From positions 248,001 to 312,000 of the IMG/VR virus record IMGVR_UViG_3300047445_000186: a stretch of DNA of 64,000 nt; one strand, given 5' to 3'. The position numbers and the translations under genes are program-made. Shown piece after piece: positions 2,965 through 37,954 of this stretch. Within the stretch, counting starts at the first letter, position 1. Each line of letters starts with the position of its first letter. The notes under the pieces are model-generated. The model was not told the DNA's origin and ran no database searches. It was given only the letters and a program-made list of their open reading frames with translations.

Positions 2965-3249
2965 ATGAACGAACAACCCCTCCTGCAAAAAGTCGAACAG
3001 GTCTACACGGTCAGGATCGTCGGTGAATTCACGATGATCACGCCGAAGGACGACTTCAGCCAACCGTTCCGAATCCGGGAAAAGGACGGAGTGTTCATCG
3101 TGTCCAAGGGCTGGACCGAGCGGGTCTGGGAACCACTGAAGTGGCAGAAGAAGAAATCCTGCGCCACGATGAACGAGGTGTACGACTACCTCATCAAGGA
3201 CTGGAACAAATCCGCCAAGATCGCCGGCATGAGCAGGACTCCCATATGA
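2965..3249 (+). CDS. Small early hypothetical protein, probably leaderless
   Basis: TACAAT(2953)-ACATCC-ATG. Confidence 0.7.
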   Translation: MNEQPLLQKVEQVYTVRIVGEFTMITPKDDFSQPFRIREKDGVFIVSKGWTERVWEPLKWQKKKSCATMNEVYDYLIKDWNKSAKIAGMSRTPI

Positions 3250-3455
3250 ACGGCGAGTACGTCCACAAGCCCCAGCCGAGGCCCGGCAAGTGCCACATCT
3301 TCAAGTCGTGGAACGGGTTCTGGTACCTGAACTCGAACAACGTGGAGGACTGGGTCCTCGCTGATAAGGCCCGCGTGCACTGCATCACGCGGAACAACGT
3401 CATTCGCGAACGCAATCGCGAGATTCTCGAAGCATCGCTAGGAGTTCTGAAATGA
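3246..3455 (+). CDS. Small early hypothetical protein
   Basis: ATGA-coupled chain of small ORFs. Confidence 0.65.
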   Translation: MNGEYVHKPQPRPGKCHIFKSWNGFWYLNSNNVEDWVLADKARVHCITRNNVIRERNREILEASLGVLK

Positions 3456-3721
3456 GCCAACTCGTGATCTACAACTGGTCCTGCAAGAAGCTCAAGGACC
3501 AGCTCGTTCTGACCGGCTTCGTGTCTGGTCATCCCACCGTTCCCGACGGGAACTTCGTGAACGCGACTTCGCCGGTCGTCGGGATCGTGCAGAAGCACAA
3601 TCAGACGTTCGCGCAGACCAAGAGCGGTCGCGAGTACCGCCTCGGCTTCGTTTCGACTGAGCACGAGACGTCGCACCCGAACGCCCGCGAGGGCTTGATC
3701 AAACTGTTCTCGAAAGGCTGA
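3452..3721 (+). CDS. Small hypothetical protein
   Basis: ATGA-coupled; GFVSGHP..DG..TS..TKSGREYRLG pattern. Confidence 0.7.
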   Translation: MSQLVIYNWSCKKLKDQLVLTGFVSGHPTVPDGNFVNATSPVVGIVQKHNQTFAQTKSGREYRLGFVSTEHETSHPNAREGLIKLFSKG

Positions 3722-5316: not shown

Positions 5317-5799
5317 TCAGCACTCCTGAGTTTCCTTGTAGTACTCATCCTCGATGAACGCGTGGTAATCGGCGAACGCGTCACCATCGACCTTGCGGTA
5401 CGTGTACCCGTTCAGCTTCCAGCGCTTTATGAACCTGTTGTACAGCTTCGCTCTGCTCGGGCCCTTTGTCTTGTCTGCTTCGAAGAACACGACTGATGGC
5501 TTGAGCATCTTGAGCGCATCCTCAAGGAATTTCTTCGCGGCTGCGAAGATCGCGAGCTGATCACCATCCCCCGTGGCGTCGTACGTTTCGCCATCTTCAT
5601 TGTAGCGATCGTCGTCCTCATCGTCCTCGCCATCGCCTAGTTGGACGAATGTGAAGTTCCATTTGCTGTCGTCCGGCCACCTGTCCATTCGAAATTCAAT
5701 CTCGCGGCCACCGAACTTGGCTCGAGCCCGGTAGGATTTCCCATTGTCTTTTACGACAGTGAGAGTGGTGTTCGTGTTCAGGATTTCGAAGATTTTCAT
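5317..5799 (-). CDS. Late hypothetical protein with MKIFEIL leader
   Basis: Minus strand TAAATA-GGAG-T-ATG directly upstream. Confidence 0.75.
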   Translation of the reverse strand: MKIFEILNTNTTLTVVKDNGKSYRARAKFGGREIEFRMDRWPDDSKWNFTFVQLGDGEDDEDDDRYNEDGETYDATGDGDQLAIFAAAKKFLEDALKMLKPSVVFFEADKTKGPSRAKLYNRFIKRWKLNGYTYRKVDGDAFADYHAFIEDEYYKETQEC

Positions 5800-5892
5800 A
5801 CTCCTATTTACGAGGTGTTCGTCCCGGTCCTGATTCGAGGACTCCAGTGCGGTGTATCTTTCTTACGATACACCCTCATCACTGGAGTTCAA

Positions 5893-7008
5893 ATGTTTCC
5901 CTCGATCGCAAAACTTGACGACTTGCTGCCGTTCGTTCAATCGAACAAGCAGATTCGCGTAAAGCCGTGCGACACGACTGGCCATACGGTCGTGTGCTAC
6001 ATGGTTCAAGACGAAGACACGTTCGACGGGGATCATCATGAATTCGCACGTGAATGCCGTGGTATCTCGTTCGACAAGAACGGCAAGATCAGCGCCCGCA
6101 CGATGCACAAGTTCTTCAACGTTGGCGAGCGTCCTGAAACGCAGCCTGACGTGATCAACTGGCGGGAAGTCACGCGGATCATGGAGAAGCGCGACGGCTC
6201 GATGGTAACACCTGTGTTACTCACCGAGAAGACCTTCAAGTTCAAGACGAAGAAGTCGTTCACGACTCCCGAAGCTGGACTGGCCGACTCGATCTGCCGT
6301 GAAGATCTGAACAAGTACCAGTGGGTGCTCCGGCTCCTGCAAGGCGGGTACACGCCGACTTTCGAGATCACTTCGCCACGGTTCCCGATCGTGGTCCGAT
6401 ACGAGAAGGACGAGCTCACGCTCCTGCATGTTCGCGAGAACGCGACTGGCCGGTACCTGTCGGCTGACGATCTGAAGTGGCTGCTTCCACCGTTCGCGCT
6501 TGTTCTCGATCACTCTGGCGAGTTCAAAGTGGACGGCGTTGTGAGCTGGGACAAGCTGAAGGTTGCGTCTGAAACGGCCGAAGGCATGGAAGGTTGGGTG
6601 ATCCAGTTCCGATCAGGCGAGATGGTGAAGCTGAAGACGAAGTGGTACATCGATTTGCATCACTCCGTGACGTTCACACGTTGGCGCGACATTGCTCGCA
6701 CCGTCTGTGCTGATCAGTCTGACGACTTGAAGGCTGCGTTCGCAATGGTTGGTCGCTCTGTCGAGCCGATCCTCCAGGTAGAGCGGAAGATCAAGTCTCG
6801 GATCGAGACTGTGGAACTGCTGGTGCGAGCATGTGTGCTGCACGCGAAAACGAACGGAATGTCGATCAAAGAAACGGCGCTGCACTTCAAGGAGAACGAG
6901 TTCTTCGGGCTGATCATGCGTTCGTTCCGTGATCAAGAAATCAACTGGGTAGAGTTCTACGAGAAGCACTACCTTGAACGAGACTTTGGATTGGAAGTTG
7001 TAGCATGA
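5893..7008 (+). CDS. rnlA: RNA ligase 1 (T4 Rnl1-like)
   Basis: KFFNVGE, motif I EKRDGS, TFE, EGWV..VKLKT; SD GGAG before ATG 5893. Confidence 0.92.
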   Translation: MFPSIAKLDDLLPFVQSNKQIRVKPCDTTGHTVVCYMVQDEDTFDGDHHEFARECRGISFDKNGKISARTMHKFFNVGERPETQPDVINWREVTRIMEKRDGSMVTPVLLTEKTFKFKTKKSFTTPEAGLADSICREDLNKYQWVLRLLQGGYTPTFEITSPRFPIVVRYEKDELTLLHVRENATGRYLSADDLKWLLPPFALVLDHSGEFKVDGVVSWDKLKVASETAEGMEGWVIQFRSGEMVKLKTKWYIDLHHSVTFTRWRDIARTVCADQSDDLKAAFAMVGRSVEPILQVERKIKSRIETVELLVRACVLHAKTNGMSIKETALHFKENEFFGLIMRSFRDQEINWVEFYEKHYLERDFGLEVVA

Positions 7009-12944: not shown

Positions 12945-13401
12945 TCTTCTTTCCTCTAGGCCGCGTTAAGACGGCTTCACTTCCATGAAGGCGCTCCAGT
13001 TCTGCTGAGAGCGCCTTTTCTGCATTCTTCGCGGCCTCAAGTGTGAATCCACCTTCGTGGACTTCGAACTTGATATTGATCGCGTTCACGTCGGTCATGT
13101 ACTTCCGACTGTACAGTTGGCTCTTGCCAATCCTGGTCGTGGTCTTGCAGTTCTTCAGTTCGGATTTATGCAGAGACGCCCGCGTTCGTGGTTGCCCACT
13201 CTGGCCTGCGTAATACATCGTGTGTCGCACGACCTCGTCCCCCATGAAATCCATGGCTGCTACGTAGGTTGATGTGCTGCCGTCAACGTGCTTTGAAACG
13301 TCGATCGTCATTGTGATCTTGATGTTCTTTTCGATATGAGCGCGCCATTGATCGGCGACTCCATCAAGATCTGGTGGGAGTTCTAAAATTGCTTCGGTCA
13401 T
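12931..13401 (-). CDS. GIY-YIG family endonuclease (free-standing, homing-type candidate)
   Basis: TYVAAM..MYYAGQSGQPRTRASLHKSEL and helix AKNAEKAL; own CGTTACAAT promoter. Confidence 0.65.
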   Translation of the reverse strand: MTEAILELPPDLDGVADQWRAHIEKNIKITMTIDVSKHVDGSTSTYVAAMDFMGDEVVRHTMYYAGQSGQPRTRASLHKSELKNCKTTTRIGKSQLYSRKYMTDVNAINIKFEVHEGGFTLEAAKNAEKALSAELERLHGSEAVLTRPRGKKIKAQ

Positions 13402-13584
13402 TTGCCGTCTTATGAGTTGGACGGCATGACTACATTGTAACGAGACCTTTTCAAAAACCGTTACTGAATTCGAGTTCAGGTCGGGGAACTCCGAATTAAA
13501 ATCGAGTCATGGGATCAAGATAATGAGACGTAATACAAACGTATTACTTTGGATATAAATTTTCACCTTCCTTGAGGGATCGAA

Positions 13585-13971
13585 ATGGATGTTCTAATTC
13601 GCCGTCGAGAGATAGACACAACCACCCACGTAGTTGAAGTTCATCTGAACGATGAATGGCTTGAATTCGCGAGGGCTACTGCTGAAGAGCCCGATCACCG
13701 CGAAGCTCATCTCTCGCATGCAGAGCGTGAAGCGTTATCTCGAATGGAGGAACTCGTTCAAGGTCCTCCCGTTCCATTCTTTGTAGGCCCAGTCCTCTGC
13801 TGTGCTTATCATCTGTCTCCCACGATGTTGAAGCATGATCTCGACATGCACGGGGCGGATGGGTTCGCCACGCGACACAATCTACTGATCCACGAGTCAG
13901 GCAGAGAGTTCGAAGAACAATTCAAAGCTTGGTACGACGAGCTCTCTGCGGGGACGTATGGCGGCGCGTAA
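13585..13971 (+). CDS. Hypothetical protein
   Basis: GAGGG SD, AT-rich upstream region. Confidence 0.6.
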   Translation: MDVLIRRREIDTTTHVVEVHLNDEWLEFARATAEEPDHREAHLSHAEREALSRMEELVQGPPVPFFVGPVLCCAYHLSPTMLKHDLDMHGADGFATRHNLLIHESGREFEEQFKAWYDELSAGTYGGA

Positions 13972-14179
13972 AGAGCCGCGACCCCCACCCACACCTGAGG
14001 AACTCGTGATCATGAAGATCGAGATTCAAGCGCGTACTGACGCCCTCATGATAGTGGCTACCAGATTGTCTGGTGTGCACACGCTACCAGGCAACGGCCT
14101 GGCCGGCCAATTGATCACCTCGGCCGAGCCACTTGTCAAATTCATCCTCACAGGAGATAAACCTATCGAACGGCACTGA
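13958..14179 (+). CDS. Small hypothetical protein
   Basis: Overlaps previous gene. Confidence 0.55.
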   Translation: MAARKEPRPPPTPEELVIMKIEIQARTDALMIVATRLSGVHTLPGNGLAGQLITSAEPLVKFILTGDKPIERH

Positions 14180-14218
14180 CAGAACTCAACTTTCGAAAAT
14201 CAACATGTTGAAAGGGTA

Positions 14219-14449
14219 TTGATGACAGCGACCCCCGTAGAGCAATTTACTGTGAATTGCACACAAGCACTCGCGATTCGATTCGTAGACACGTTCCACA
14301 CGGGTGACGAGATCGAGAAAGAAGTCGCGAAGACTGAGTTTACGAGACTCACGAAAGCCATGTACGCCGATGGCACCGCTTGCGCAGTTCAATGCAAGGT
14401 GCTCTTGCGTACGATGCAGGACGCGCTGCACGGGAACTGGCCAAGTTGA
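14219..14449 (+). CDS. Small hypothetical protein
   Basis: ORF ending before terminator. Confidence 0.55.
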   Translation: MMTATPVEQFTVNCTQALAIRFVDTFHTGDEIEKEVAKTEFTRLTKAMYADGTACAVQCKVLLRTMQDALHGNWPS

Positions 14450-14469
14450 CTGCTCGTTGTAAGGTGAAC

Positions 14470-14495
14470 GCGGCCGGCGAAAGTCGGCCGCTTCT
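14470..14495 (+). terminator. Hairpin GCGGCCGGC-GAAA-GTCGGCCGC
   Basis: GC stem with GNRA loop after gene. Confidence 0.6.
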
Positions 14496-14615
14496 ATATG
14501 CGAGACACGAAACCGGTGCTCGTTACAATTCTCTGGCAGACCGTTACCGTTTTCTGGTTTTTCTGGCCGCGACCGGGTTATAGTTCACCTATCGCAACGA
14601 GAAACGGAAAAACAA

Positions 14616-15623
14616 ATGTCGAATGTCTGCATCGGTCAATACAACGCTGGCGCTGAACGTTGGGAAGCAATCTACCGCGGTCGCACGATCGCGACGAGCA
14701 AGGACCTGAACGGCGGCCCCGAGTACCTGAAGAAGGTCATCGAAGGCGGCTTCAGCCAGAAGGCCCAAGCGCTCGGCGTCACGAAGATCGAGATCATCGC
14801 AATCGGCGGAAGCGCAGCGAATGAAGATGGTGTCGCCGGCGAGTACATCCCGGCCGCCGACATGCCGAGCGTCGAGAAGGAATTCTCGATCAACGAGCGT
14901 TTCGAGATCATGGAGTCGTACGTCGAGATGGTCGCAGCGCGAGAAATTGCGTCGACGGTCGTGACAGGCGAAGGCGGTCTCGGGAAGTCGTTCACGGTTC
15001 TGCGGACCCTGAAGGCCGCCGGCCTCCAAGACATCTCCCTGATGGAGATCGGTGCTCGACACGCCGGCAAGCAAGGTTTCGTCACGATCAAGGGTTTCAG
15101 CACTCCCAAAGGTCTGTTCCGTACGCTGTACGAGAATCGGAACCAGATCGTGATGTTCGACGACTGCGACCAAGTTCTGCGTGATCCGAACTCGGTGAAC
15201 ATCCTGAAGGCGGCGCTCGACTCGTACGACACTCGCCTCGTCACGTGGAACTCGGAAGGCGGCTTCGGCGGCGAAGATGATCTGCCGAAGACGTTCGAAT
15301 TCACGGGCGGCGTGATCTTCGTCTCGAACATGCCGAAGTCCAAGGTCCCGCAAGCGATTCGCTCGCGAGCCATGAGCGCTGACGTCTCGATGACGCGAGA
15401 TGAAGTCGTCGAACGGATGCGAGTGATCGTGAGCTCTGACGAGTTCATGCCTGACTACGAAATGACGGCGAAGCTCGAGTCGCTCGAGTTCGTCGCTCAA
15501 CATGCTCACAACCCACTGATCACCGAGCTGAACCTCCGGTCGCTCGTGAACGTCGTGAAGACCCGGACGGCCAAGCCCGAAAAGTGGACTCGCATCGGTC
15601 TGTACGCAATGGCGAACTCCTGA
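14616..15623 (+). CDS. AAA+-type P-loop ATPase
   Basis: Walker A GEGGLGKS, Walker B VMFDDCD, NILKAALDS, IFVSN. Confidence 0.85.
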   Translation: MSNVCIGQYNAGAERWEAIYRGRTIATSKDLNGGPEYLKKVIEGGFSQKAQALGVTKIEIIAIGGSAANEDGVAGEYIPAADMPSVEKEFSINERFEIMESYVEMVAAREIASTVVTGEGGLGKSFTVLRTLKAAGLQDISLMEIGARHAGKQGFVTIKGFSTPKGLFRTLYENRNQIVMFDDCDQVLRDPNSVNILKAALDSYDTRLVTWNSEGGFGGEDDLPKTFEFTGGVIFVSNMPKSKVPQAIRSRAMSADVSMTRDEVVERMRVIVSSDEFMPDYEMTAKLESLEFVAQHAHNPLITELNLRSLVNVVKTRTAKPEKWTRIGLYAMANS

Positions 15624-15639
15624 TCAAGGAGTTTCGAAA

Positions 15640-16068
15640 ATGAAACACACACTTCCTCCCGGCACCTACTTCATCGGCGACCCTGGGAACGTGCTTGAAC
15701 AGAGTTGGGACTCGATCCTCGTGTCGACGAACTTCTTCAGCGAGCCCGACCCAATCCAAATCCAGGGCCGCTCGATCTGGGGACACCGAACCCTGAACGG
15801 CAACGGCCGTTTCACCGATCAGAACGGGATCGAGTACAAGGTCGCGGACCAAGTGCTCGGCGCAGTGAACATCGAGCTGATCGAGAATCCCGAAGGCGAG
15901 ACACTTGGGACGGTCCTGATCGCCCCGAACGGTCTGGACGTCGAGTTCTTGAACGGAGTGTTCACGTTCAACTCGATCGTGATCGACTCGAACGACCCGG
16001 CCGAGACGGACTTCGGCGACATCGACGGCGGGTACGATCTCGACTTGAACGGCGACACATTCCTATGA
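15640..16068 (+). CDS. Hypothetical protein
   Basis: AAGGAG SD; GTYFIGDP motif. Confidence 0.7.
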   Translation: MKHTLPPGTYFIGDPGNVLEQSWDSILVSTNFFSEPDPIQIQGRSIWGHRTLNGNGRFTDQNGIEYKVADQVLGAVNIELIENPEGETLGTVLIAPNGLDVEFLNGVFTFNSIVIDSNDPAETDFGDIDGGYDLDLNGDTFL

Positions 16069-16403
16069 GCACCAAATCTCTACTCCAGCGCGCGCTGGAA
16101 GGACTGATCGCGACGGGTGCACTTGACGGCCAGGTGCAGAGCTACAGCGGCCGAGCGATGTACGGTCAGGAATGCGTCGGATTCTCGACTGACGACGCAG
16201 ATCAGGTTTCGCTTGGTGTTCTCCTCGCTCGCTGGGTCGCGACTCCCGGGAACTTCAAGATGTACGACCCGGACGAGTACATCGACGACAAGCTCGCGCT
16301 TCTGCTTGTTGAAACCAAAGGCACGCGTCGAGACTCCCTCGGTCTGGGCGTGATCCTGTACTGGCCGAACATCGAATTCTCAAACGACTCCGACAAAGGA
16401 TAA
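16065..16403 (+). CDS. Hypothetical protein
   Basis: ATGA overlap; YSGRAMYGQECVG motif. Confidence 0.7.
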   Translation: MSTKSLLQRALEGLIATGALDGQVQSYSGRAMYGQECVGFSTDDADQVSLGVLLARWVATPGNFKMYDPDEYIDDKLALLLVETKGTRRDSLGLGVILYWPNIEFSNDSDKG

Positions 16404-16406
16404 GTC

Positions 16407-16745
16407 ATGCGCTCACGCTGCCATCTGCACTTCAATCAGCTCGAAGCTTTCCGCGAATTCCTCGTCTCTCGAGGCTGGGTCGAGGAACAGGCGAAGGGCC
16501 AGTACGAGAAGCTGCGGATGCGGCACAAGCGCGAGAAGGATCCTCTGATCCTGCACGTTCGTGAAGGCGCGAAGGAGCACTTCACGACTTGGGGTCTGAG
16601 CGAGAAGATGGCGAGCGCCTTCCTCCATCGTCGACAGGAACCGACCTCGGCCGAGATAGCGTCGGTCCTGCATGACGAGCAGTTCCACCTAGCTGCCGCT
16701 GGCGACCACGAGGTGTCGCCGGTTGCACCGAATTTAGAGCGGTAG
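16407..16745 (+). CDS. Hypothetical protein
   Basis: Tiled in operon. Confidence 0.65.
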   Translation: MRSRCHLHFNQLEAFREFLVSRGWVEEQAKGQYEKLRMRHKREKDPLILHVREGAKEHFTTWGLSEKMASAFLHRRQEPTSAEIASVLHDEQFHLAAAGDHEVSPVAPNLER

Positions 16746-16774
16746 CTGGTACTACACCGCTCAAGGAAACGATC

Positions 16775-17218
16775 ATGCGACGTCTGCAGCGACAAGCAGT
16801 AAATAGACCAAACACACGGTCTACTATGTCGCCTACTCAAACCCGAGCGGTTCTAATTCGTCAAGCTGCGTGCGCCGTCCAGGCGCTAGACGCGGATCTG
16901 AACCATCTTCTCGACGCGTACGATTTCTACGTGCAGCGTTTCCCAGATGACAAGGAACTCGCCGATCTGAACGTTTCGATCGACGCTCTCGGCTCGCTTC
17001 CCCTGATCGTTGCGCATCAGCTCACGCACTGGGCGCAGAACGAAAAGTCAGAACTCTCGAGAGATGCTTTCGAGATTGGCGTACTGAACGAATTCTCGCT
17101 CCACATGTTCGCGCTCACGAACTTCATGGAGCGGAAGAACGTTGATGTTCAAGATGTCGTGCCTGAGAAAGTGGCCGACGCTTTCAACGCGCTGAAACTC
17201 ACGAACACAATCCTATGA
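16775..17218 (+). CDS. Hypothetical protein (alternative start 16826 behind late promoter)
   Basis: AAGGA SD at first ATG; TAAATA 16800 plus hairpin before second ATG. Confidence 0.65.
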   Translation: MRRLQRQAVNRPNTRSTMSPTQTRAVLIRQAACAVQALDADLNHLLDAYDFYVQRFPDDKELADLNVSIDALGSLPLIVAHQLTHWAQNEKSELSRDAFEIGVLNEFSLHMFALTNFMERKNVDVQDVVPEKVADAFNALKLTNTIL

Positions 17219-17580
17219 AAGTCACCGAACTGCTTGAGAGCGGCGGTGACCTGCGCGCGAAACTGATCGACAAGATGCGACTCCAGTTCGAGAGGAACGG
17301 GAAGTACATCAATTGTCGCCTTGCTGTGCAGCTCACGGTCGATGTTCCAAAGCTCGAAGAACTGCCGAAAGTGAAGCCGAAAGAGATGATTCTCGGCGAC
17401 ATTCTCGCTTGGGGAATCGCGCACTTCGCGATCTACCTCGGGAACGGCGAAGTTCTCGAAGTCCCAGGCTGGGGCGATCAAGTACAAATCACGCCTTTGA
17501 AGGCCGTTGAAGCGGATTACGACAAGGTCCGCACTGTTTACCGAGTTCCTGCAGATCAACTGCAGAAAGCCCTACAATGA
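17215..17580 (+). CDS. NlpC/P60-like cysteine hydrolase with MKVTELLE leader
   Basis: INCRLAVQ (Cys) then GDILAWG.AHFAIYLGNG (His). Confidence 0.7.
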   Translation: MKVTELLESGGDLRAKLIDKMRLQFERNGKYINCRLAVQLTVDVPKLEELPKVKPKEMILGDILAWGIAHFAIYLGNGEVLEVPGWGDQVQITPLKAVEADYDKVRTVYRVPADQLQKALQ

Positions 17581-18110
17581 AACTACAAGAACTAGCTAGC
17601 GCAGAGCGCTTTAATTCCACCACGCTGCTTGAAAGCGGCAACGCAGCCCTGCGCGCGAAACTCACTGATGATGAGTGCTTAGTTCTTGCGTTATTGATTC
17701 ATGATAAGGGGCACATCATGGCCCGCGGTAATCATGACAGCGATTTAGATAGCGCGATCAGCAAGCTAAAGATGAAGTCTACTATCCCACTTTATCGTGG
17801 CGTGTCTGATAAGGAGTTAGCAGAGATTATCGCTGGTGAAGCTGATCACTATCTCTCCTTCTCAGAAGATCGAAATGTTGCAAAGGGTTTTGGCGCGAAT
17901 GTGATTACGCTAAAGCCTGGGGCTGTGGGTCTCTGTTACTGGAAATGGGGAATCGCAGATAATAAAGCGCTCGCGAAAAAGTATGGCAAGCAATGGGCTG
18001 AGGACCAGGATATTCAGTACATGATCGATTCATTTGAGGAAGAGAAAGAGTGGGTGTTCCCGTTTGAGACACGGTTCACCCAAGTCGGACCTCTAGAGTT
18101 CAAGCAATGA
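17577..18110 (+). CDS. ADP-ribosyltransferase-like protein (R-S-E type) with MKLQEL leader
   Basis: LYRG, YLSFSED, EEEKEW. Confidence 0.75.
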   Translation: MKLQELASAERFNSTTLLESGNAALRAKLTDDECLVLALLIHDKGHIMARGNHDSDLDSAISKLKMKSTIPLYRGVSDKELAEIIAGEADHYLSFSEDRNVAKGFGANVITLKPGAVGLCYWKWGIADNKALAKKYGKQWAEDQDIQYMIDSFEEEKEWVFPFETRFTQVGPLEFKQ

Positions 18111-19363
18111 AACTACAAGAACTAGCTGGTGCAAAGCGCTTTAATTCCACTGAGGGCGGTGGGATCACCGACGCTCTCGATCTTCTTCAAGCCGAATTCG
18201 AAGCTGGCAGAACGTCGCTTCGCATTCTCGGCACTGGCGCGAACGGCGTTGCCCTGACGAATGGCACGAGCGTTTTCAAGTTCTGGCATCGCGATAGCTC
18301 GTACGAGAAGTTCGTGAATTTCTGCCACGAAAACAACAGCCCATTCCTGCCGAAGTTCACGTCAAAGATCAAGAACCTTTCTCCTCGCGTTTTCTATACA
18401 GCGACTGCTGATGAAGACGGCGAGAACATCGTGAAGGGCGTGAAGTACGTGAAGATGGAACTCCTGAAGCCGTACAAGGGCCAAGGCGGTTGCGAGGTCT
18501 GGGCGGACAAGAACATCCAAAAGGCGATCGGTGTTGACGACCCTGAGCTGGATGAGTACGGTGTCGTGAACTTCATGTCGTACGAAGACATCTGGAATTG
18601 CTCAGGTATGTCACGCACTCCTCGCGGCGCATTGATGGAGCTCTTGAGTCATCATGCCTTCCTGAATGATCATCTCGAGTACGAAGAACTGGTTCCATAT
18701 CTCGAGAAGATGAACCGCGAGATCATCGACATGGTCGGTGTTCTCGTGAAGCTTCATACGGTCTTTGGCAAGGAAGATCGACTGGATTTCGGCCCTCGGA
18801 ACATGGCGCTTCGTGGAGACCAAGTCGTGATTCTCGATCCTATCGTGAACGACAATGACATCATCGTGAACAACATGATCATGGACTTGTCGAAGTACCG
18901 GACGCCGCCGAAGATCCAAGAGAGTACCGACACCGATGCCGAGCGTGAAGCTGTCGATGAGTGGATTGAAGCCGCTTATCTTGACGAGCCAGTGATGCGG
19001 AAGTTCCTGATGAAGGGGCTCCCTTCGTTTGGCGAGAAATGCTATCGAGCAGAGTTCGGCTCGAAGGCCAAGAAGTTCAAGGCGCTTCCGATTGGTGAGG
19101 ACGTGGACATGTCATACAAGTCGGCTTCGGCGTCGATGGCTGCGCTCAATAACGGCGTGATCGAGCCGAACGGTGGTGAGCACTGGCTGCTCGAGCTTCG
19201 TATTCCAAGCGGGCTGCGCTGCGGTCGAGACATCAAGCACAGCGATCCCGAGCATCCCGAGAACGTGCAAGAGGAATTCTTGATCGGCCCGGGTGTGAAG
19301 TTCAAGATCATGAAGCAGCTCGCGGATCGAACGATTCTCGTTGCACAGAACTCCATGCACTAA
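18107..19363 (+). CDS. Protein kinase-like domain fused to C-terminal ADP-ribosyltransferase domain
   Basis: LGTGANG, VFK, DFGPRN, ILDP; then CYRA, YKSAS, VQEEFLIGPGVKFKI. Confidence 0.78.
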   Translation: MKLQELAGAKRFNSTEGGGITDALDLLQAEFEAGRTSLRILGTGANGVALTNGTSVFKFWHRDSSYEKFVNFCHENNSPFLPKFTSKIKNLSPRVFYTATADEDGENIVKGVKYVKMELLKPYKGQGGCEVWADKNIQKAIGVDDPELDEYGVVNFMSYEDIWNCSGMSRTPRGALMELLSHHAFLNDHLEYEELVPYLEKMNREIIDMVGVLVKLHTVFGKEDRLDFGPRNMALRGDQVVILDPIVNDNDIIVNNMIMDLSKYRTPPKIQESTDTDAEREAVDEWIEAAYLDEPVMRKFLMKGLPSFGEKCYRAEFGSKAKKFKALPIGEDVDMSYKSASASMAALNNGVIEPNGGEHWLLELRIPSGLRCGRDIKHSDPEHPENVQEEFLIGPGVKFKIMKQLADRTILVAQNSMH

Positions 19364-19389
19364 ATAGAGTTCGAACACGAGAACCGATC

Positions 19390-20679
19390 ATGAAAGTCAA
19401 CGAACTATTTGAAGCCCGTCAGCTCCGTGAAGGATCCTGGTACGACGACTTCCGCCCAGAAGATACCGTCCCGTCCCAAAAAGACAAGGGATGGACGGGT
19501 CGTCATAAGGTGAAGGAAGACGACGGAGAGACGTACGAAGACCTGAAGTATGAAGGTCGAATTCTTCTCCATTACGATGCTCCTATCAAGACGCATGGTC
19601 TTGATCAAGCAGCCGTTAAAGAGGCCTATGAGAAAGCGAAGGCTAAATTCTTGGAAATTCGTGCCGCGCATCCAACGCAGCTTCGCTTTAAGACTTCCGT
19701 TGAAGCCACAAAGTACATGAAGACGATGGAGTACCCTGGTTGGACTCTCGTCGTGCAGTATGCAAGGCTGAACTGGGGATCCGGAGGATACAAGTACGCA
19801 CAAGACCTCGAGTACAAGACGCCTCGCAAGGTTAAGACGCTCGACTTGCCAAAGCAAGAGTTCAAACCAAAACACGCCGAGAACGCGATCAATGCGGAAA
19901 TGGACGGCGATAAGGTCAAGCTCAGCATTGACGTGAAGGTCGGTCCTCTGATGTCTGCATTCATCACGACGGTTTATAACGTCGGCGATAAAATGAAGGC
20001 AAAGATTCTTAACGTTAAGGGCAAGGTCCTTGACTATGATGATCTCTATCGCTCACGCCCACAGAAAGTTTGGGTGACCACTACTGATCTGGATCGTGTG
20101 AAGGCGATCATCGCGAAGAAGCATGCTGACCGCGTTGAGGATGAGAAGGCAGATCACGACAAACTGCAGAACGCTTTGACTGACCGCAAAGAAACCAGCA
20201 AATGGCGAGCTGACGATCAGAAGCAGCGAAAGGCTAAACTCCACGCAACATACGGTAAGGAAATCGTCGATCGTGTGAAGATCAAGTCTATGAGCATGGA
20301 AGGTGATGATGGTTATCAATGGGCTCTGTTCGTTGATGGACGGCGCAAGAAGTCAGGTCTGACTAAGTATCAAGCAGAGGGTGAGCAGCGTATCATGTGG
20401 CGCTGGCTGAAAGAGTACGAGGACATGACTCCTGAGCAGCGGCTGCAGCACGCTCAAGAACTTGAAGGTATTCGCCTGTACTTCATGATGGACGCGATTG
20501 AGAAGTCAGTTGGCGCGCAACTTCCACAGTATCTGAACGCGATCAAGAAGAATGCGAAGGACTTCGTTGATGCGAAGCAGGCAACTAAGGACGCGATCGA
20601 AACTTCGAAGGTCTCTGACGCTCAAGCAAAGAGCATCTTTAATGACCTGATGAAGCGCATGGGCGACAAGCTGGACTGA
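19390..20679 (+). CDS. Late hypothetical protein, probable internal head protein (MKVNELFE leader)
   Basis: TAAATA 19361; highly charged; LFE/LRE sites near N-terminus. Confidence 0.7.
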   Translation: MKVNELFEARQLREGSWYDDFRPEDTVPSQKDKGWTGRHKVKEDDGETYEDLKYEGRILLHYDAPIKTHGLDQAAVKEAYEKAKAKFLEIRAAHPTQLRFKTSVEATKYMKTMEYPGWTLVVQYARLNWGSGGYKYAQDLEYKTPRKVKTLDLPKQEFKPKHAENAINAEMDGDKVKLSIDVKVGPLMSAFITTVYNVGDKMKAKILNVKGKVLDYDDLYRSRPQKVWVTTTDLDRVKAIIAKKHADRVEDEKADHDKLQNALTDRKETSKWRADDQKQRKAKLHATYGKEIVDRVKIKSMSMEGDDGYQWALFVDGRRKKSGLTKYQAEGEQRIMWRWLKEYEDMTPEQRLQHAQELEGIRLYFMMDAIEKSVGAQLPQYLNAIKKNAKDFVDAKQATKDAIETSKVSDAQAKSIFNDLMKRMGDKLD

Positions 20680-20797
20680 TCCCGAAATCCGAGTGCACTC
20701 GGACTCCTCCGTGATTAAATAAGAACTGGTGCTGATGAGGCACCTTTTCTTTTACCTGCGAACAGTGGGTACCTATCACAACCTCGGAGTACGAGAC

Positions 20798-21613
20798 ATG
20801 TCAGACCGCACCACCATCGGTGATCGGATGAAGAGCTACGAAGCGCCTTCAACGACCCGCAAAGCTTTCAAGGGCCAGCCCCTCATTGTCCGCCTGGACG
20901 GAAGCTCATTCCACAAATTCACCAAGGGCATGAAGCGCCCATTCGATCTGGTTCTGAGCCAGCTCATGATCGACACCATGAAGTCCATGGTCGAGCGATA
21001 CAACGCGAACATCGGGTACACGCAATCGGACGAGATCACGCTCGCCTGGTACATGGAGCCATTCGAATCTCGCGAGCTCGAGTTCGGTGGCCGCTTCCAG
21101 AAGTTCGAAAGCGAACTTGCTGCATGGTGTTCTGTGAAGTTCAACTCGCTCCTTCGCGAAACCGAGTACGCCAAGAAGGCAGAGATGCTGCCGTACTTCG
21201 ATGCTCGCGCGTTCGTCGTGCCGAACTTGACCGAAGCGATGCACTGCTTCCTGTGGCGCCAGCAAGATTGCACGAAGAACGCGATCAGCATGGCCGCTCA
21301 GTCGATGTTCTCGCACAAGGAACTGCAAGGGAAACATGGGCCTGAGATGCAGGAGATGATGTTCCAGAAGTTCAACGTGAACTTCAACGACTACCCTTCG
21401 CACTTCAAGCGTGGCACGTTCGCTCGACGCGTGAAGCGCGAGTGGTTCCCGTCCGATGCAGAGATCGAAGCGATTCCGGAGAAATACCGGCCAAGTGGGC
21501 CAATCCTCCGCTCGTTCGTGCAGACCGAAGACATCTGGCTATCGAAGCAACCGAGCGGAACGCAAGCTCTGTTCGGTGACGCACCGATCGTTACAAATGT
21601 TACGGTGTCATGA
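20798..21613 (+). CDS. tRNA(His) guanylyltransferase Thg1-like protein
   Basis: RMKSYE, IVRLDGSSFHKF, YTQSDEITL, FDAR, WRQQDC..NAI. Confidence 0.92.
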   Translation: MSDRTTIGDRMKSYEAPSTTRKAFKGQPLIVRLDGSSFHKFTKGMKRPFDLVLSQLMIDTMKSMVERYNANIGYTQSDEITLAWYMEPFESRELEFGGRFQKFESELAAWCSVKFNSLLRETEYAKKAEMLPYFDARAFVVPNLTEAMHCFLWRQQDCTKNAISMAAQSMFSHKELQGKHGPEMQEMMFQKFNVNFNDYPSHFKRGTFARRVKREWFPSDAEIEAIPEKYRPSGPILRSFVQTEDIWLSKQPSGTQALFGDAPIVTNVTVS

Positions 21614-21739
21614 GATACAATCTGAGCATGAACACCCACAAGGAAACTTCATGCTCAACATTGCACGCCTTGCAGGCGAGCTGCTAGCCATCAAGGCAAA
21701 GCTCGCCTGGAATTCGGTCCAGATCTGTTGGTACTCGTG

Positions 21740-21883
21740 ATGGACGACCCAGACATCCTGTTCGCGATCGTGATCCTCGTGATCGTGGCGATCGTGAACA
21801 GTTTGCACTTGGATCACTGCGATCAGGACCGCCGCGGCTCAGATGGTCCGCTGTGTACAAAAGACGAGAACGGGTTAGAATAG
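21740..21883 (+). CDS. Small membrane protein (47 aa, not in track)
   Basis: MDDPDILFAIVILVIVAIVNSL..; overlaps stop of 29-aa ORF 21651-21740. Confidence 0.45.
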   Translation: MDDPDILFAIVILVIVAIVNSLHLDHCDQDRRGSDGPLCTKDENGLE

Positions 21884-21937
21884 CTCTGTCCACACGGACA
21901 CGTCGGGCAATTTCGCCTGATGAAACGGAGCACATCC

Positions 21938-22297
21938 ATGTCAGCATCAACTGCCCCTATTCGCGGGCGCATCTTCACGTTCTTAATTCGCAAAGCAGTG
22001 CTACGTGAAACCGCAACCTACGAGGAAATCGCACTTCGGTTCGATCTTCCGAGTTCTGGAAGCCAACTCGCCGTCGTACTCTCGCCGCTTCTCGGCGATC
22101 TGTTCAAGTGGTGTGAACGTTCCGGTCTGCCAAAAATCACCTCGCTCGTCGTGCGCAAATCCGGCGCCGAAGAAGGCCTGCCTGGCCGAGGGTTCTGGAC
22201 TCTGCTCGATCTCGATCTGCTCGACACGAGCGCGAAGCGCGTTGTGCTGAAGACACTCCAGAACGAAGTGTACACATTCTACTCGGCCCTTCGATGA
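21938..22297 (+). CDS. Hypothetical protein
   Basis: GGAG SD. Confidence 0.65.
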   Translation: MSASTAPIRGRIFTFLIRKAVLRETATYEEIALRFDLPSSGSQLAVVLSPLLGDLFKWCERSGLPKITSLVVRKSGAEEGLPGRGFWTLLDLDLLDTSAKRVVLKTLQNEVYTFYSALR

Positions 22298-22539
22298 AAT
22301 TCTTCTGTGACGATGGACGGCACTTGATCTGCGTGCCGTACTCGATCGAGAATCTGCACGCGATGGCCGAGGAACTTGGTATCAAGCGCTGCTGGTTCCA
22401 CAACATGAAGTACCATCATTACGACATTCCGAAACGTCGTATCGCCGAAATCCAGGCGAAGTGCACCGTCGTCTCGGATCGTGAGATTCTGACGATCATC
22501 AAGGCAGCTCAACAGGAGCTCGCAGAGACCACCGAATAG
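22294..22539 (+). CDS. DUF4031-like small protein
   Basis: LHAMAEELGIKRCWFH..HHYDIPKRR. Confidence 0.65.
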   Translation: MKFFCDDGRHLICVPYSIENLHAMAEELGIKRCWFHNMKYHHYDIPKRRIAEIQAKCTVVSDREILTIIKAAQQELAETTE

Positions 22540-22560
22540 CACGGTGTAGCGCTAACCAAA

Positions 22561-22590
22561 CGAGGGACCCTAGGGTCCCTCGGCTGTTTC
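22561..22590. terminator. Bidirectional terminator, 22-bp perfect palindrome
   Basis: CGAGGGACCCTAGGGTCCCTCG between convergent genes. Confidence 0.8.
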
Positions 22591-22604
22591 TGGTGGTCCG
22601 AGCC

Positions 22605-23261
22605 TTAGCCGCGGCTGATATCGATGATTGCGTCCTTCGCTGCATCGGCACCGAGCGTGGTACGGATGAACGAGCGGATTGCCGAGTCTTGCAGAGCACC
22701 CTTGGTCGGGAGCAGAACTGCGTGGACTGAAGAGCCCATGCCAGCAGAACCCTTCTTGACCTTGTTGTGCACGTTGTTACCGAGCGAGCCGGCGAACTTC
22801 TTCTGGATCGCAGCAAGGAGAGCTTGAGCGGCGGTGCGGTCAAGGTTCTGAACTTCGATCGAGAACGATGGACCTTCGTGGAAAGCTTCTTCCAGAGCTT
22901 CGTAAGCGCGGCGGCCAGTCTGATTCTTTGCCTTCAGGTCGTTCACCTTGTCTTGCTTTGCGAGAACCTTGCGATCGCGCGAATCAAGAACATCATCCCA
23001 ATCTGCATCGTCGTTCGCACCAGCGGCCTTAGCTGCAGGGGTGACCTTCTTCTTGTCGCCAGCGGCCCAAGCAGCCAGAGCTGCGTCGAGCTCTTTCTTC
23101 TTCTCTGAGCTCATGCCCTTCAGACGTTCGCGTTCCTTCTTGAGCTTGTCAAGCTTGGCGTTATTGCGGAACAACCCGAAGATTTCGTTGATCTGTTCGT
23201 CAGAGAGTTCATCGCCGGTCTCGACGAATTCGTTGAACTTCTTGAAGGAAACTTTTGACAT
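22605..23261 (-). CDS. Late protein, probable internal head protein
   Basis: TAAATA 23296; N-terminus SFKKFNEFVE resembles T4 capsid-targeting sequences. Confidence 0.7.
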   Translation of the reverse strand: MSKVSFKKFNEFVETGDELSDEQINEIFGLFRNNAKLDKLKKERERLKGMSSEKKKELDAALAAWAAGDKKKVTPAAKAAGANDDADWDDVLDSRDRKVLAKQDKVNDLKAKNQTGRRAYEALEEAFHEGPSFSIEVQNLDRTAAQALLAAIQKKFAGSLGNNVHNKVKKGSAGMGSSVHAVLLPTKGALQDSAIRSFIRTTLGADAAKDAIIDISRG

Positions 23262-23367
23262 ACCCGTGATCCTGTGATCGTTGTAATTTGAGATTTATTT
23301 AGACCCGGTAGCCAGAAGATCCCAATGTCCAGGTGCATACGAAGGCACGATCGTTACAATTGTTCTC

Positions 23368-23733
23368 ATGTTCCATCCTGTTCTGTGGCGATGGCACAAC
23401 CACCAAGGGATCAACATGAGACGTTTTATTCTGGTTACGGCTACGCAGTCGGAACCGGCCGGGGTGAAGACACACTCTGGCATCAAGAAGCTCAAGCGAG
23501 GAGTCGGGATCGTTGACTTCATGAGCGAGTACCTCGAGCAATTCGCAGGTCAAAAGGAAATCTACGCACGTGGCGAAACGCAGGTCGCGTTCGCTCGCGA
23601 AGATAACAAGTCCATTCAATGGGCATTCACCGAGTTCGCAGAAGACGAGCTCATTCGGGCCGTGTCGAACCTGACCCGTGAAGAACTCCTTCGCGATCTG
23701 AAAGAACTGCTCCCGCTGAAGGCTGCGCTGTGA
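23368..23733 (+). CDS. Hypothetical protein
   Basis: CGTTACAAT-N7-ATG. Confidence 0.65.
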   Translation: MFHPVLWRWHNHQGINMRRFILVTATQSEPAGVKTHSGIKKLKRGVGIVDFMSEYLEQFAGQKEIYARGETQVAFAREDNKSIQWAFTEFAEDELIRAVSNLTREELLRDLKELLPLKAAL

Positions 23734-35711: not shown

Positions 35712-36596
35712 ATGCGTCTCGACGAACTCGCCGGTGTAAAGAAATTCCAGCGACTACAGTGGCATCAAATCACGCGTCTGCTTGATCGGAAATTCGGCAT
35801 CAAATACATTGGTGGCGGAAAGTACGGTCAGGTTTTCACGCACCCGGGCTGGGACTACGTCGTGAAGATCATGGAGCGCGAGGACCCGAACTATCTGGAG
35901 TTCGTTGACTTCGCGCTGAAGCATCCAGACAAGCATTATCCGAAGATCATCAAGAAGCCTTTCATGATGCACGCTTTTCACAAGCGTGAACGCAGCCAGA
36001 AGTACCAACGTCTGACTGTCCTGAAGATCGAGAAGCTTCTCCCGATCGAGAAGAACAAGCTTGACTTCATTGTTCAGAACCTGGATCAATACGCCAGCAT
36101 CGTCACTCGGTACAAGAACAACGAGTACAAGCACGAGAAGAACCAAGAGGCGTACACGCAAAAGCATCCACACCACACGAAGGTCTTGCCTGACGGCACA
36201 AGTGAACAGAACCTGTCGTACAAGGACATCTTCGATCGGTACCCATGGTTCGAGGATCTGTGCTGGGCATTCCGCCGGATCATGGACAACTCGGAGTACG
36301 GGTCGGCCGATATCCATGGTGGGAACTTCATGGAGCGGAAAGACGGCACCGTCGTGATCATCGATCCGCTGTGGGAAGGATACAACTTCGAAGCTGCTGC
36401 ATGGCAGGCCGAGATGGCTGAACGCGGCGACTACTGGGGCGACTACGAAGAGCACATCCCAATGGTCAGCGGCCCCGGGTATGACAGTGCACGCAAGCGT
36501 GAAGAACAAGAAGCGCTCGAGAAGAAGGAAGCCGAAAAGGCGGCCAGGATTGCTGGCGTGTTCGCGCACAATTTCGACGACGATATTCCGTTCTGA
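35712..36596 (+). CDS. Protein kinase-like protein with MRLDELAG leader and SSB-like C-terminal tail
   Basis: IGGGKYG, VVK, DIHGGN, IIDP; ends NFDDDIPF; TAAATA 35683. Confidence 0.8.
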   Translation: MRLDELAGVKKFQRLQWHQITRLLDRKFGIKYIGGGKYGQVFTHPGWDYVVKIMEREDPNYLEFVDFALKHPDKHYPKIIKKPFMMHAFHKRERSQKYQRLTVLKIEKLLPIEKNKLDFIVQNLDQYASIVTRYKNNEYKHEKNQEAYTQKHPHHTKVLPDGTSEQNLSYKDIFDRYPWFEDLCWAFRRIMDNSEYGSADIHGGNFMERKDGTVVIIDPLWEGYNFEAAAWQAEMAERGDYWGDYEEHIPMVSGPGYDSARKREEQEALEKKEAEKAARIAGVFAHNFDDDIPF

Positions 36597-36717
36597 CCGG
36601 CCGGAACTGCTAAATACTTTGCACGCACCTCTGTGCGTTCTAAAGGGTTCGGAGAAGCATTCAGCTTATCCGGTAAATCGTTGAACGATTACCCACATGC
36701 CTAGTAAGGAGATTCAC

Positions 36718-37146
36718 ATGGCAGCAGCAAAGATTGAAAAGCGCGGTACCGACCTCAAGCACGTGTTCCTGATTGACTGGAACGACGATGGTATCTTGAA
36801 GGAAATCGCCGTTGTAAACGAACAGGCAGATGGCACTCTCTTCGGTATCGAAGTTGACCGACTCCATCCAATCGACAAAGCCCGCCTGAAGAAGGTCATC
36901 ACATCCGTTCACGCTGACAAGTACGCCCTCTGGGAACTTCTGTCGCAAGGTCGTCTGAACAACGGCATGAACGCTCTGGACTTCTTCCACGCGAACTATG
37001 TCAAGGTCAAGCGTCCAAAGGGTGCGATGATCGGTGGTGGTCTTGCTTCGATCGAGGTTGATCTCGACGACGGCCGCATGATTGGCTCCAGCTTCTCGAA
37101 CCCACTGGGTGCGACGGTAGCTAGCGAAGTGCCAGCAATGCGCTAA
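36718..37146 (+). CDS. Late hypothetical protein
   Basis: AAGGAG SD; TAAATA 36611; terminator after. Confidence 0.75.
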   Translation: MAAAKIEKRGTDLKHVFLIDWNDDGILKEIAVVNEQADGTLFGIEVDRLHPIDKARLKKVITSVHADKYALWELLSQGRLNNGMNALDFFHANYVKVKRPKGAMIGGGLASIEVDLDDGRMIGSSFSNPLGATVASEVPAMR

Positions 37147-37169
37147 CCTGATCCCGAAATCAGGCTAAG

Positions 37170-37200
37170 AAGGGGTCGCTATGCGACCCCTTTGTGTTTT
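37170..37200 (+). terminator. Intrinsic terminator
   Basis: AGGGGTCGC-TAT-GCGACCCCT followed by T-rich run. Confidence 0.85.
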
Positions 37201-37306
37201 AGAATCACAGTTCTAACAAACTTAGGAGATGCCAGGCAATACACATCGGCTCGTATAATGAGTCACCACCTGAAACTACGGTGAGCAATCACCCAACTCT
37301 AAAGGA

Positions 37307-37954
37307 GTGCACCACATGTACAAGACCCTTGCGGCGCTCGGCGTCGTTCTAGCTCTTGTTTCCTCAGCCGCCTATCAAATGGTCGGCCTTCTCCCTGAGC
37401 CAAAGGCCAATACGGTCCTGGCTGAGAAGTCATCTGTTATCCTCGGTGGTCAGGCCGCCGTTCTAGTCCCCGACAATCTGTCGACGAGTCAGTACCAAGT
37501 GCTGAACACGGCGTACCAGATTGCAAAAGCGGATGGACACAAAAACCCTGAACTTGTTCAGGGGATTCTGCTCCAAGAATCCAAAGCCGGTGCGATGAAC
37601 TCGTACAAGGTCGCCGGGAATAAAGGCGACGAATACTACGGCCTCGGCCAGATCAAGCTTGCGGCCACACGCGACGTGATGGCGACCTTCCCCGCTCTGT
37701 GGGCGAAATACAAGTTCCAAACGAAAACCGACGACGAGCTGAAAGCGAATCTGATCTTGAACCAGACGTTCAACATCGAGATCACGTCGAAGTACCTTAA
37801 GATGTTACAGGAGCGATACGGTCTTTCCGGCCGGCAACTCGTGAATGCTTATAATCGTGGTCCAGGCGGCGTGAAGAACGTGGACTCCTCGTTCCATTAC
37901 GCCATTGGTGTCGAAAAGAACATCGCGAACATGCGAAAGAAGAAGGACAGTTAA
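37307..37954 (+). CDS. SLT-like lytic transglycosylase with N-terminal signal/anchor
   Basis: ILLQES (catalytic Glu), GLGQI, AYNRGPG; hydrophobic N-terminus. Confidence 0.85.
   Translation: MHHMYKTLAALGVVLALVSSAAYQMVGLLPEPKANTVLAEKSSVILGGQAAVLVPDNLSTSQYQVLNTAYQIAKADGHKNPELVQGILLQESKAGAMNSYKVAGNKGDEYYGLGQIKLAATRDVMATFPALWAKYKFQTKTDDELKANLILNQTFNIEITSKYLKMLQERYGLSGRQLVNAYNRGPGGVKNVDSSFHYAIGVEKNIANMRKKKDS

Follow-up and report, generated by a model that had tools for sequence, protein, structure and literature searches.

A predicted fusion of a T7-kinase-like domain and a C3/VIP2-type ADP-ribosyltransferase domain in a jumbo phage of the rhizosphere

Can a single phage protein carry two different host-modifying enzymes, and how would such a chain have come into being? 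The question is raised by an open reading frame (ORF) at positions 18107-19363 (+ strand) of a 64,000-nucleotide stretch of viral DNA from IMG/VR record IMGVR_UViG_3300047445_000186, which encodes a protein of 418 residues, called the target in the following. The whole stretch (the window) runs from base 248001 to base 312000 of a virus record of 331,776 bp, which is rated as 94% complete; coordinates without a prefix refer to the window and those marked G000 to the whole genome. The genome is that of an uncultured jumbo myovirus, whose proteins include a family-B DNA polymerase of the T4 type and a helicase of the DnaB type as well as baseplate-wedge-like proteins. Judged by the DNA polymerase, the cultured phage closest to it is Ralstonia phage RsoM2USA, with 46.8% identity, and the Xanthomonas phages XacN1 and Xoo-sp13 come next. 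DNA of the virus is present in rhizosphere metagenomes.

Phosphorylation, as by T7 gp0.7, and ADP-ribosylation, as by T4 Alt, ModA and ModB, are classic ways in which lytic phages reprogramme transcription and translation of their hosts, and the T7 kinase has lately been shown to disarm defence systems as well. To our knowledge, the two modifications were previously encountered only in different phages and on separate proteins. The target would unite both chemistries, with an ADP-ribosyltransferase (ART) standing where the T7 kinase has its shut-off domain, and it is open to test whether both modifications converge on one target molecule. The reading that we prefer, at a probability of about 0.7, is that the protein is a two-enzyme host-modifying effector, composed of a T7-kinase-like part (residues 1-261) and an ART of the C3/VIP2/Certhrax type (residues 276-418), which would stem from the fusion of two leader-bearing cassettes.

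An initial annotation, made from the sequence alone, had listed kinase motifs and ART motifs within this ORF, and every one of them was found where it had been placed: GTGANG at residue 42, VFK at 56-58, DFGPRN at 227-232 and ILDP at 242-245 in the N-terminal part, PKIQES at 268-273 at the seam, and CYR at 312-314, SAS at 339-341 and QEE at 388-390 in the C-terminal part, the catalytic motifs being conserved across the homologue alignments. The ORF, whose ATG overlaps the stop codon of the upstream gene as ATGA, starts with the N-terminal leader MKLQELAGAKRF (residues 1-12, 18107-18142), and continues with the kinase-like core (residues 36-258, 18212-18880), a flexible linker (residues 262-275, 18890-18931) that contains PKIQES at nucleotides 18908-18925, and the predicted ART domain (residues 276-418, 18932-19360), all on the + strand.

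The fusion is real and not an artefact of assembly. Contigs from three rhizosphere-metagenome samples span the target gene without an indel at the junction, and the sole indels of a co-occurring strain, at 17986, 17991 and 18105, spare the seam and fall within or at the end of the upstream gene. A second allele (P0040), which is 95% identical, also 418 residues long and found in the same gene order on two further contigs, differs from the target by 63 synonymous and 22 non-synonymous codons. The ratio of non-synonymous to synonymous substitution rates (dN/dS) is 0.08 overall, 0.10 in the N-terminal part and 0.05 in the C-terminal part (dS 0.33), and the low values in both parts indicate that both halves are under purifying selection within one reading frame.

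The fusion is also unique, in that homologues of either half are otherwise encoded by separate genes or joined to other partners. A search of 5.8 billion clustered proteins retrieved 26 relatives of the target; 25 of them are 239-284 residues long and align only with the first 265 or so residues of the target, and the remaining one (P0027) matches only the C-terminal third. When residues 262-418 were searched exhaustively with HMMER against 1.84 billion representatives, only 13 proteins were found, the stand-alone members of which have 145-172 residues. Neither of these two large protein searches returned a protein with both modules besides the target's own cluster, and no homologue of the target region was found by tblastn and blastn in 50,697 phage records. 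Behind the closest homologue of the kinase part (P0002) lies a gene for a DNA ligase, and the closest homologue of the ART part (P0028, 66% identity) is a separate gene. The main texts of surveys of phage ART architectures, including one of viral NAD/ADP-ribose systems, describe no fusion of an ART with a protein kinase, and a 2026 survey of the T7 kinase describes no ART partner (PMC13645617). As far as these searches and main texts reach, the initial annotation was right that such a dual enzyme has not been described in phages; the target combines two known kinds of phage host-modifying enzyme in a new architecture and does not represent a new kind of system.

That kinase-like and ART domains reside in one chain was borne out by AlphaFold2 and Foldseek, which predict both folds, and by the family-wide conservation of the catalytic residues. 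It should be noted that all structural statements rest on predicted models, and that the two halves were modelled separately, since the whole-protein alignment had put homologues of the C domain onto the N domain. The C-domain model (13 sequences) has a mean predicted local distance difference test score (pLDDT) of 87.9 and a predicted TM-score (pTM) of 0.81. In a Foldseek search of the PDB, 93 matches had E<1e-3, and the best 50 of these are all ARTs of the C3/VIP2 kind; the matches listed include Vis, Certhrax, C3, VIP2, C2-I, ExoT, Tre1 and the inactive relative XopAI, and the matches among Swiss-Prot models are all ARTs. With VIA-align, Z values of 12.9 (the highest), 12.4 and 12.3 were obtained for Certhrax, VIP2 and C3stau2, the alignments cover 135-144 of 157 residues at about 2.5 Å, and 142 PDB chains reach Z>=8. 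In the model the first core strand holds R314, the strand that precedes the long helix holds S339-A-S341, and strand 5 begins with Q388-x-E390. R314 and E390 do not vary among 12 homologues of the C part, S339 and Q388 are each found in at least 90% of them, and a family-specific stretch just before Q-x-E, HSDxxHPEN, is nearly invariant. The C domain is thus predicted to be an ART with the arginine-serine-glutamate (R-S-E) arrangement, of the C3/VIP2/Certhrax type. PF03496 (ADPrib_exo_Tox) and related Pfam profiles match neither the target nor the 13 family members, and therefore the domain belongs to an ART family that has not been annotated so far.

In the R-S-E clade, E-x-E goes together with arginine acceptors, and Q-x-E with asparagine (C3) or guanine (the pierisin/Scabin group). 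By analogy, an ART with Q-x-E instead of E-x-E would modify an acceptor other than arginine. The settings of the ART relatives differ: P0032 is fused to topoisomerase IB, P0029 (L016) is part of a 2374-residue protein, and in P0027 the ART sits behind a region with a DGRHR motif, which may be ParB-like. The gene of a further relative, of 837 residues (P0037, L017:8001-10514), directly follows those of an ejection protein of the P22 gp7 type and of a 464-residue protein. These partners hint at DNA-associated or injected roles of the family, and, taken together with Q-x-E, the topoisomerase IB and ParB-like partners make nucleic acids conceivable acceptors.

The model of the N domain (26 sequences; pLDDT 84, pTM 0.83) comprises an N-lobe with three strands that carry G42/G44/G47 and K58, a helix (64-75) and a hinge strand with E118, and then a helical insert (135-217), a catalytic loop with D227 and N232 and a strand pair that ends in I242-L-D244-P245. 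D244-P245-I246 stands in the position of DFG, and the C-lobe that would follow is missing, the chain leaving the fold about 15 residues later. G42, G44, K58, E118, D227, N232, D244 and P245 are invariant across the 25 homologues of this part, and the residue after D244-P245 is mostly I or V. The predicted fold and the full K, D, N, D catalytic set are those of the protein-kinase-like superfamily. The best 50 rows of VIA-align are all protein kinases (Z up to 8.0), onto which residues 36-250 of the model align from the N-lobe to DFG, and Foldseek matches in the PDB are aminoglycoside phosphotransferases (APH) and PKR (probability 0.97-1.0, TM about 0.3). Matches at E 1e-8 to 1e-5 were obtained with short kinase or APH-domain proteins in the AFDB clusters and, in the viral library BFVD, with phage proteins annotated as protein kinase, T7-group phages included. 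The best structural cluster of the ESM Atlas (TM 0.60/0.67) carries PF27024, Phage_T7_kinase.

The relation to the T7 kinase is also seen in profile matches of family members and paralogues. The profile phrog_15752, annotated as T7 gp0.7, is matched by five of the 26 family members (best value 3.3e-6) and phrog_2828 by one (0.022). Three further kinase-like proteins are encoded in the genome, namely a 294-residue paralogue that starts with MRLDELAGVKKF (35712-36596, +) and paralogues of 226 residues (G000 110406-111086, L009:3406-4086) and 207 residues (G000 166097-166720, L011:4097-4720), all of which carry the leader. They align to the target-family profile with hhalign probabilities of 96.6-98.1%; all three match the T7-kinase-type phrog_15752 (3.5e-11, 4.6e-8 and 0.008), and two match the T7 kinase PHROG, phrog_2828 (1.1e-4 and 0.0056). 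The structure matches, the PHROG matches of the paralogues and the DP[I/V] motif taken together lead to the reading of the N domain as divergent and T7-kinase-like, and by analogy with the T7 kinase it would phosphorylate proteins. In the 226-residue paralogue an arginine replaces the strand-3 lysine of the other kinase-like copies.

How the two domains came to be joined is suggested by the leader. On a crude ORF call of 426 genes, which underlies all leader statistics, 18 genes start with M[KNIR][LVI]x[ED][LIF], compared with 0.57 expected from the internal frequency of the pentapeptide (Poisson 4e-21), and only five of 2070 internal methionines are followed by a leader pentapeptide. The carriers include all four kinase-like proteins, an Alt-like ART and a protein with a weak NlpC/P60 match. 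Within the kinase family, across phages, E5, L6 and K10 are invariant in the 25 homologues, just like the catalytic residues, and L3 and G8 are nearly so. A pLDDT of 52-57 for residues 1-20 suggests that the leader is a linear motif outside the fold. The leader codons vary synonymously (CTC/CTG/CTA, GAA/GAG and AAA/AAG), so that the constraint acts on the peptide, and a DNA-level or translation feature was judged less likely for the same reason. The target and the Alt-like ART gene upstream of it (17577-18110) are identical in their first 21 nucleotides and share 13 of their first 15 residues, followed by unrelated remainders, which suggests recombination within the leader. A common origin of the C domain and this neighbouring ART was considered and rejected, since neither BLASTP nor hhalign detected any similarity; the two belong to different ART families.

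The leader is not confined to this genome. In RsoM2USA (MG752970.1), the DNA pattern for MK[LIVM]xE[LIMF] occurs 34 times, compared with 0 for the reversed control, and the region 189500-215000 (locus tags 303-336) contains about 30 consecutive genes for proteins of about 195 residues, annotated as hypothetical, nearly all of which start with MKLxE[IV]. The pattern count and the array indicate that the leader is common to at least this cultured relative. By BLASTP the RsoM2USA array has no resemblance to the present genome, and the kinase profile of the target family has no match in RsoM2USA.

The seam was examined with a position-weight profile of leader residues 2-8, from which the target had been left out. 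PKIQESTD (from residue 268) scores 9.4 bits and is the best internal site of the target, true leaders scoring 11-20 bits; when 91,573 internal positions of the proteome are ranked, it falls into the top fraction of 2.5e-4, and it is located in the low-confidence linker between both models. Three stand-alone ART homologues start in a similar way, with MKLTDL (P0036), MKLKHL (P0039) and MKIKDL (P0031), and the conserved tryptophan of the first ART helix is found at residues 20-23 in these proteins and at residue 19 in the target if P268 is counted as 1. The seam thus probably preserves, as a fossil, the start of an ART gene that was formerly separate. Most simply, an ART cassette with its leader would have been joined, in frame, to the end of a kinase cassette that had a leader too, and would have lost its start codon in the process. 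A fossil leader of this kind would illustrate a way of assembling multi-enzyme effectors from single-domain cassettes that carry tags.

According to the preferred reading, residues 1-261 would constitute a minimal T7-kinase-like phosphotransferase and residues 276-418 an NAD-dependent ADP-ribosyltransferase, derived from two neighbouring effector cassettes, each with a leader of the form MK[LVI]xE[LIF], which were joined in frame, PKIQES being the remnant of the second leader. Both domains would be catalytically active, as the conserved residues suggest. By analogy with T7 gp0.7 and T4 Alt, ModA and ModB, the pair would act on host machinery early in infection, phosphorylating and ADP-ribosylating host components and thereby redirecting or disarming the cell. 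More tentatively, the leader might be a propeptide that resembles the capsid targeting sequence (CTS) of T4 and loads the target into the head; the prohead protease might then trim after [LIV]-x-E, possibly separating the two enzymes at I270-Q-E272, and the products might be ejected together with the DNA.

Several observations weigh against this reading. The target itself has no match in Pfam, PHROG (at E<=1) or PDB sequence searches, the kinase Z values of at most 8 are in the range that the tool calls middling, the global TM-scores of 0.25-0.45 are low, and the alpha-C glutamate E67 is not invariant. The leader-like seam has no hydrophobic residue at position 6, the tripeptide [LI]xE occurs seven times in the target (residues 3, 148, 176, 270, 292, 329 and 361), and the gene, at about 266 kb, is not beside the packaging genes, the head module being located at 4-10 kb. 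In addition, the top PDB matches of Foldseek are APHs, so that a small-molecule substrate is possible. The N domain might accordingly be a small-molecule phosphotransferase of the APH, choline or nucleotide kinase type, or catalyse AMPylation or glutamylation on a kinase fold, and the fusion would then couple a metabolite-directed activity with ADP-ribosylation. We consider this improbable: the best matches are indeed APH(2'')-Ia and APH(2'')-IIa, names of the APH-domain or homoserine kinase type II are among the AFDB matches, and the model, like APH enzymes, lacks an activation segment and has a helical insert after the hinge and before the catalytic loop, but the 50 best rows of VIA-align, the T7-kinase-type PHROG matches of paralogues and family members and the intact K, D, N, D set speak for a protein kinase, as does the DP[I/V] motif, which fits the family of the T7 kinase, a proven promiscuous Ser/Thr/Tyr kinase (PMC13645617). 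It is more improbable still that just one of the two domains is an active enzyme, the other having no role beyond targeting or regulating it, for example, as a pseudokinase scaffold or an NAD-binding sensor. The variable alpha-C glutamate and a serine motif that reads S-A-S in place of the family's usual S-T-S would be in line with a dead domain; yet in both domains none of the residues that such enzymes normally need is missing or varies within the family, the variant strain has S339-T340-S341 and keeps R314, Q388 and E390, and the dN/dS values given above attest to strong purifying selection on both halves.

A different alternative leaves both enzymes as they are and concerns only where they act. 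The target could be a purely intracellular early protein that is never packaged and not cut at the seam, and its leader would serve otherwise, in translation initiation at weak Shine-Dalgarno sites, as a tag for a chaperone or partner, or as a degradation signal. A Shine-Dalgarno-like 4-mer at -20 to -4 precedes only four of the 18 leader genes, compared with 139 of the 426 crude genes overall; the target gene is surrounded by replication and nucleotide-metabolism genes and not by head genes; a complex prediction for the protease, the scaffold-position protein and the target gave a score of 0.00, which lends no support to packaging and is evidence in neither direction; and the T7 kinase is itself an unpackaged early protein (PMC13645617). 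We nevertheless regard this alternative as rather unlikely, because the synonymous variation of the leader codons and the invariance of E5, L6 and K10 across phages point to a protein-level signal, the leader cargo includes classes that are typically virion-borne (an NlpC/P60-like peptidase and an Alt-like ART), one ART homologue lies within an ejection-protein module, and the scaffold-position protein has a related N-terminus.

The case for packaging draws on the head module and on T4. The head module encodes a portal, a prohead protease of the Peptidase_S77 type, two unannotated proteins and the major capsid protein; the protease, encoded at G000 5877-6485 between the portal and major capsid genes, matches PF03420 at 93.5 bits and phrog_207 at 5e-56. 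The scaffold-position protein starts with MKLLQEML and ranks 17th of 426 by a leader profile that allows one inserted residue. The prohead protease of T4 cuts after L/I-x-E, and the T4 CTS is a 10-residue N-terminal peptide that is common to unrelated internal proteins and has been suggested to let T4-like phages load varied proteins into the capsid (PMC9026906). T4 Alt is packaged in the head, and gp21 removes seven N-terminal residues and a C-terminal piece from it (PMC9026906). About 44% of phage ARTs have been estimated to be in head-packaging contexts (PMC9503650). In the present genome, the leader contains [LVI]-x-[ED] at residues 3-5, common to the 18 genes, and PKIQES contains the I-x-E tripeptide I270-Q-E272.

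A T4-type prohead protease in the genome makes capsid packaging, ejection and cleavage at I-Q-E plausible. The chance that the target is packaged in the capsid is close to even or somewhat below, and cleavage at I270-Q-E272, by which the initial annotation had proposed that the domains might be released, is unlikely. It is likewise doubtful that the leader is a portable capsid-targeting and ejection signal marking about 20-35 small injected effectors, with the target being cut at both its real and its fossil leader and delivering two writers; the injected set would in that case include four T7-like kinases, at least four ARTs and a peptidase, in a lineage related to RsoM2USA. If the leader were a packaging signal, the injected proteins of a jumbo-phage group about which little is known could be listed by a simple rule on their sequences, and there would also be a handle for loading foreign proteins into the capsids of these phages. 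The cultured RsoM2USA, which has the same kind of leader and for which published virion proteomics covered only 10 abundant bands, could be used for testing packaging.

The comparison with known systems puts the target between several of them. Homologues of the T7 kinase have DPV for DFG, with the valine less conserved in jumbo phages, and the kinase domain comprises residues 1-242 (PMC13645617). Like T7 gp0.7 (PHROG 2828, PF27024), the target is phage-restricted and has a minimal kinase of about 240-260 residues that ends soon after DP[V/I], followed by a second, C-terminal module, which in T7 is the domain for shut-off of host transcription. Unlike in T7 gp0.7, the C-terminal 143 residues of the target are predicted to adopt an ART fold and contain no shut-off domain, a direct match to a T7-kinase profile is missing, and the leader is absent from the description of the T7 kinase. 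Jumbo-phage homologues have been described to have lost the shut-off domain, and variants with divergent C-termini to contain no alternative domains (PMC13645617).

T4 Alt resembles the target in being an R-S-E ART of a large myovirus with a T4-type prohead protease and in having a short N-terminal [LI]xE peptide, but Alt has E-x-E where the target has Q-x-E and lacks a kinase domain, and packaging and cleavage are established for Alt and only proposed for the target. C3 exoenzymes, VIP2, iota-Ia, CDTa, Certhrax, Vis and Tre1 share the predicted fold (Z 11-13, about 2.5 Å over about 136 residues) and have R, S-x-S and [Q/E]-x-E at the same structural places, with Q-x-E as in C3. They differ from the target in sequence (12-22% identity), and the target has its own HSDxxHPEN loop and is a phage protein without a secretion or binding component.

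Polyvalent proteins, like the target, combine at least two host-directed enzymatic domains in one polypeptide and have small stand-alone cassettes nearby. The study that described them names ARTs and truncated kinases without the C-terminal subdomain among the commonest modules, proposes delivery with the DNA, assigns these ARTs to the H-Y-D clade and states that the Alt/VIP2 type is absent from them (PMC5512222). Unlike polyvalent proteins, the target has an ART of the R-S-E type, only two domains and no link to MuF, portal or relaxase. Membership in Kinase-PolyVal was also considered and rejected, PF18762 matching nothing in the genome at E<=10. The leader genes, in turn, resemble the genes of T4 internal proteins, which are likewise small, unrelated, often adjacent and equipped with a shared short N-terminal peptide, which in T4 has the prohead protease motif at its end; the leader sequence differs from the T4 CTS, the protease-type motif is at residues 3-5 compared with 8-10, and there are about 20 carriers compared with the three internal proteins plus Alt of T4.

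Four consecutive genes on the + strand, at 17215-17580, 17577-18110, 18107-19363 and 19390-20679, all start with MK[LV]xEL. The gene at 17215-17580 encodes 121 residues with the weak NlpC/P60-type peptidase match, that at 17577-18110 encodes the Alt-type ART (177 residues, PHROG 832 (Alt), 2.6e-7), and the last of the four, at 19390-20679, encodes 429 residues without a family match. A scan of the region 13000-23500 for promoters and terminators gave counts at chance level. In the co-occurring strain (run X3, L013 + L014), the small indels affect the 3'-terminal stretch of the ART gene upstream, and the 1-nt deletion at 18105 lengthens this ART to 188 residues, which produces an overlap of 38 nt with the start of the target gene. 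The other leader genes in the window are at 5317-5799 (-) and 35712; outside it, leader genes start at G000 25957, 26832, 94165 (-), 108562, 109014, 109361, 110406, 163970, 164485, 166097, 175404 and 177835. Most leader genes have no family match, and most are located in adjacent runs (108.5-111, 164-166.7, 175-178 and 265-268.7 kb). Leader variants with one inserted residue were found at G000 34343 (MKLIQEI), 6489 (MKLLQEML) and 115406 (MKMLQEL).

A different N-terminal hexapeptide, MAIKAV, is shared in another phage by two genes (L006:693-1136 and L006:1138-1611), namely that of the stand-alone ART P0028 and the one preceding it, and each phage may have an N-terminal tag of its own.

Two tandem genes for proteins of about 160 residues, at G000 36661-37146 and 37154-37642 (L021:2661-3146 and 3154-3642), have sub-threshold matches to ART-PolyVal, PF18760 (E 5.8e-4 and 3.5e-5); counting these, the ART domains of the phage number at least four and belong to three types. 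The two proteins start with MLLTELLAYHGT and MLLSEITVYHGS, and these N-termini (MLLTELL and MLLSEIT) are related to the leader without conforming to it. The genome also encodes a Macro domain protein (841-1362, +; PF01661, 25.5 bits) and a NAPRTase/NadV-type enzyme (G000 105461-106186; 144.6 bits), and an ADP-ribosylglycohydrolase (PF03747) was not found. Judging from their sequences, the Macro and NadV proteins could remove ADP-ribose and resupply NAD, and would fit an extended NAD/ADP-ribose toolkit. The window contains no tRNA genes, and just downstream of the leader run it encodes a Thg1-like tRNA-His guanylyltransferase (20729-21613, +), which matches PF04446 at 1.6e-27 and phrog_4717 at 4.6e-71.

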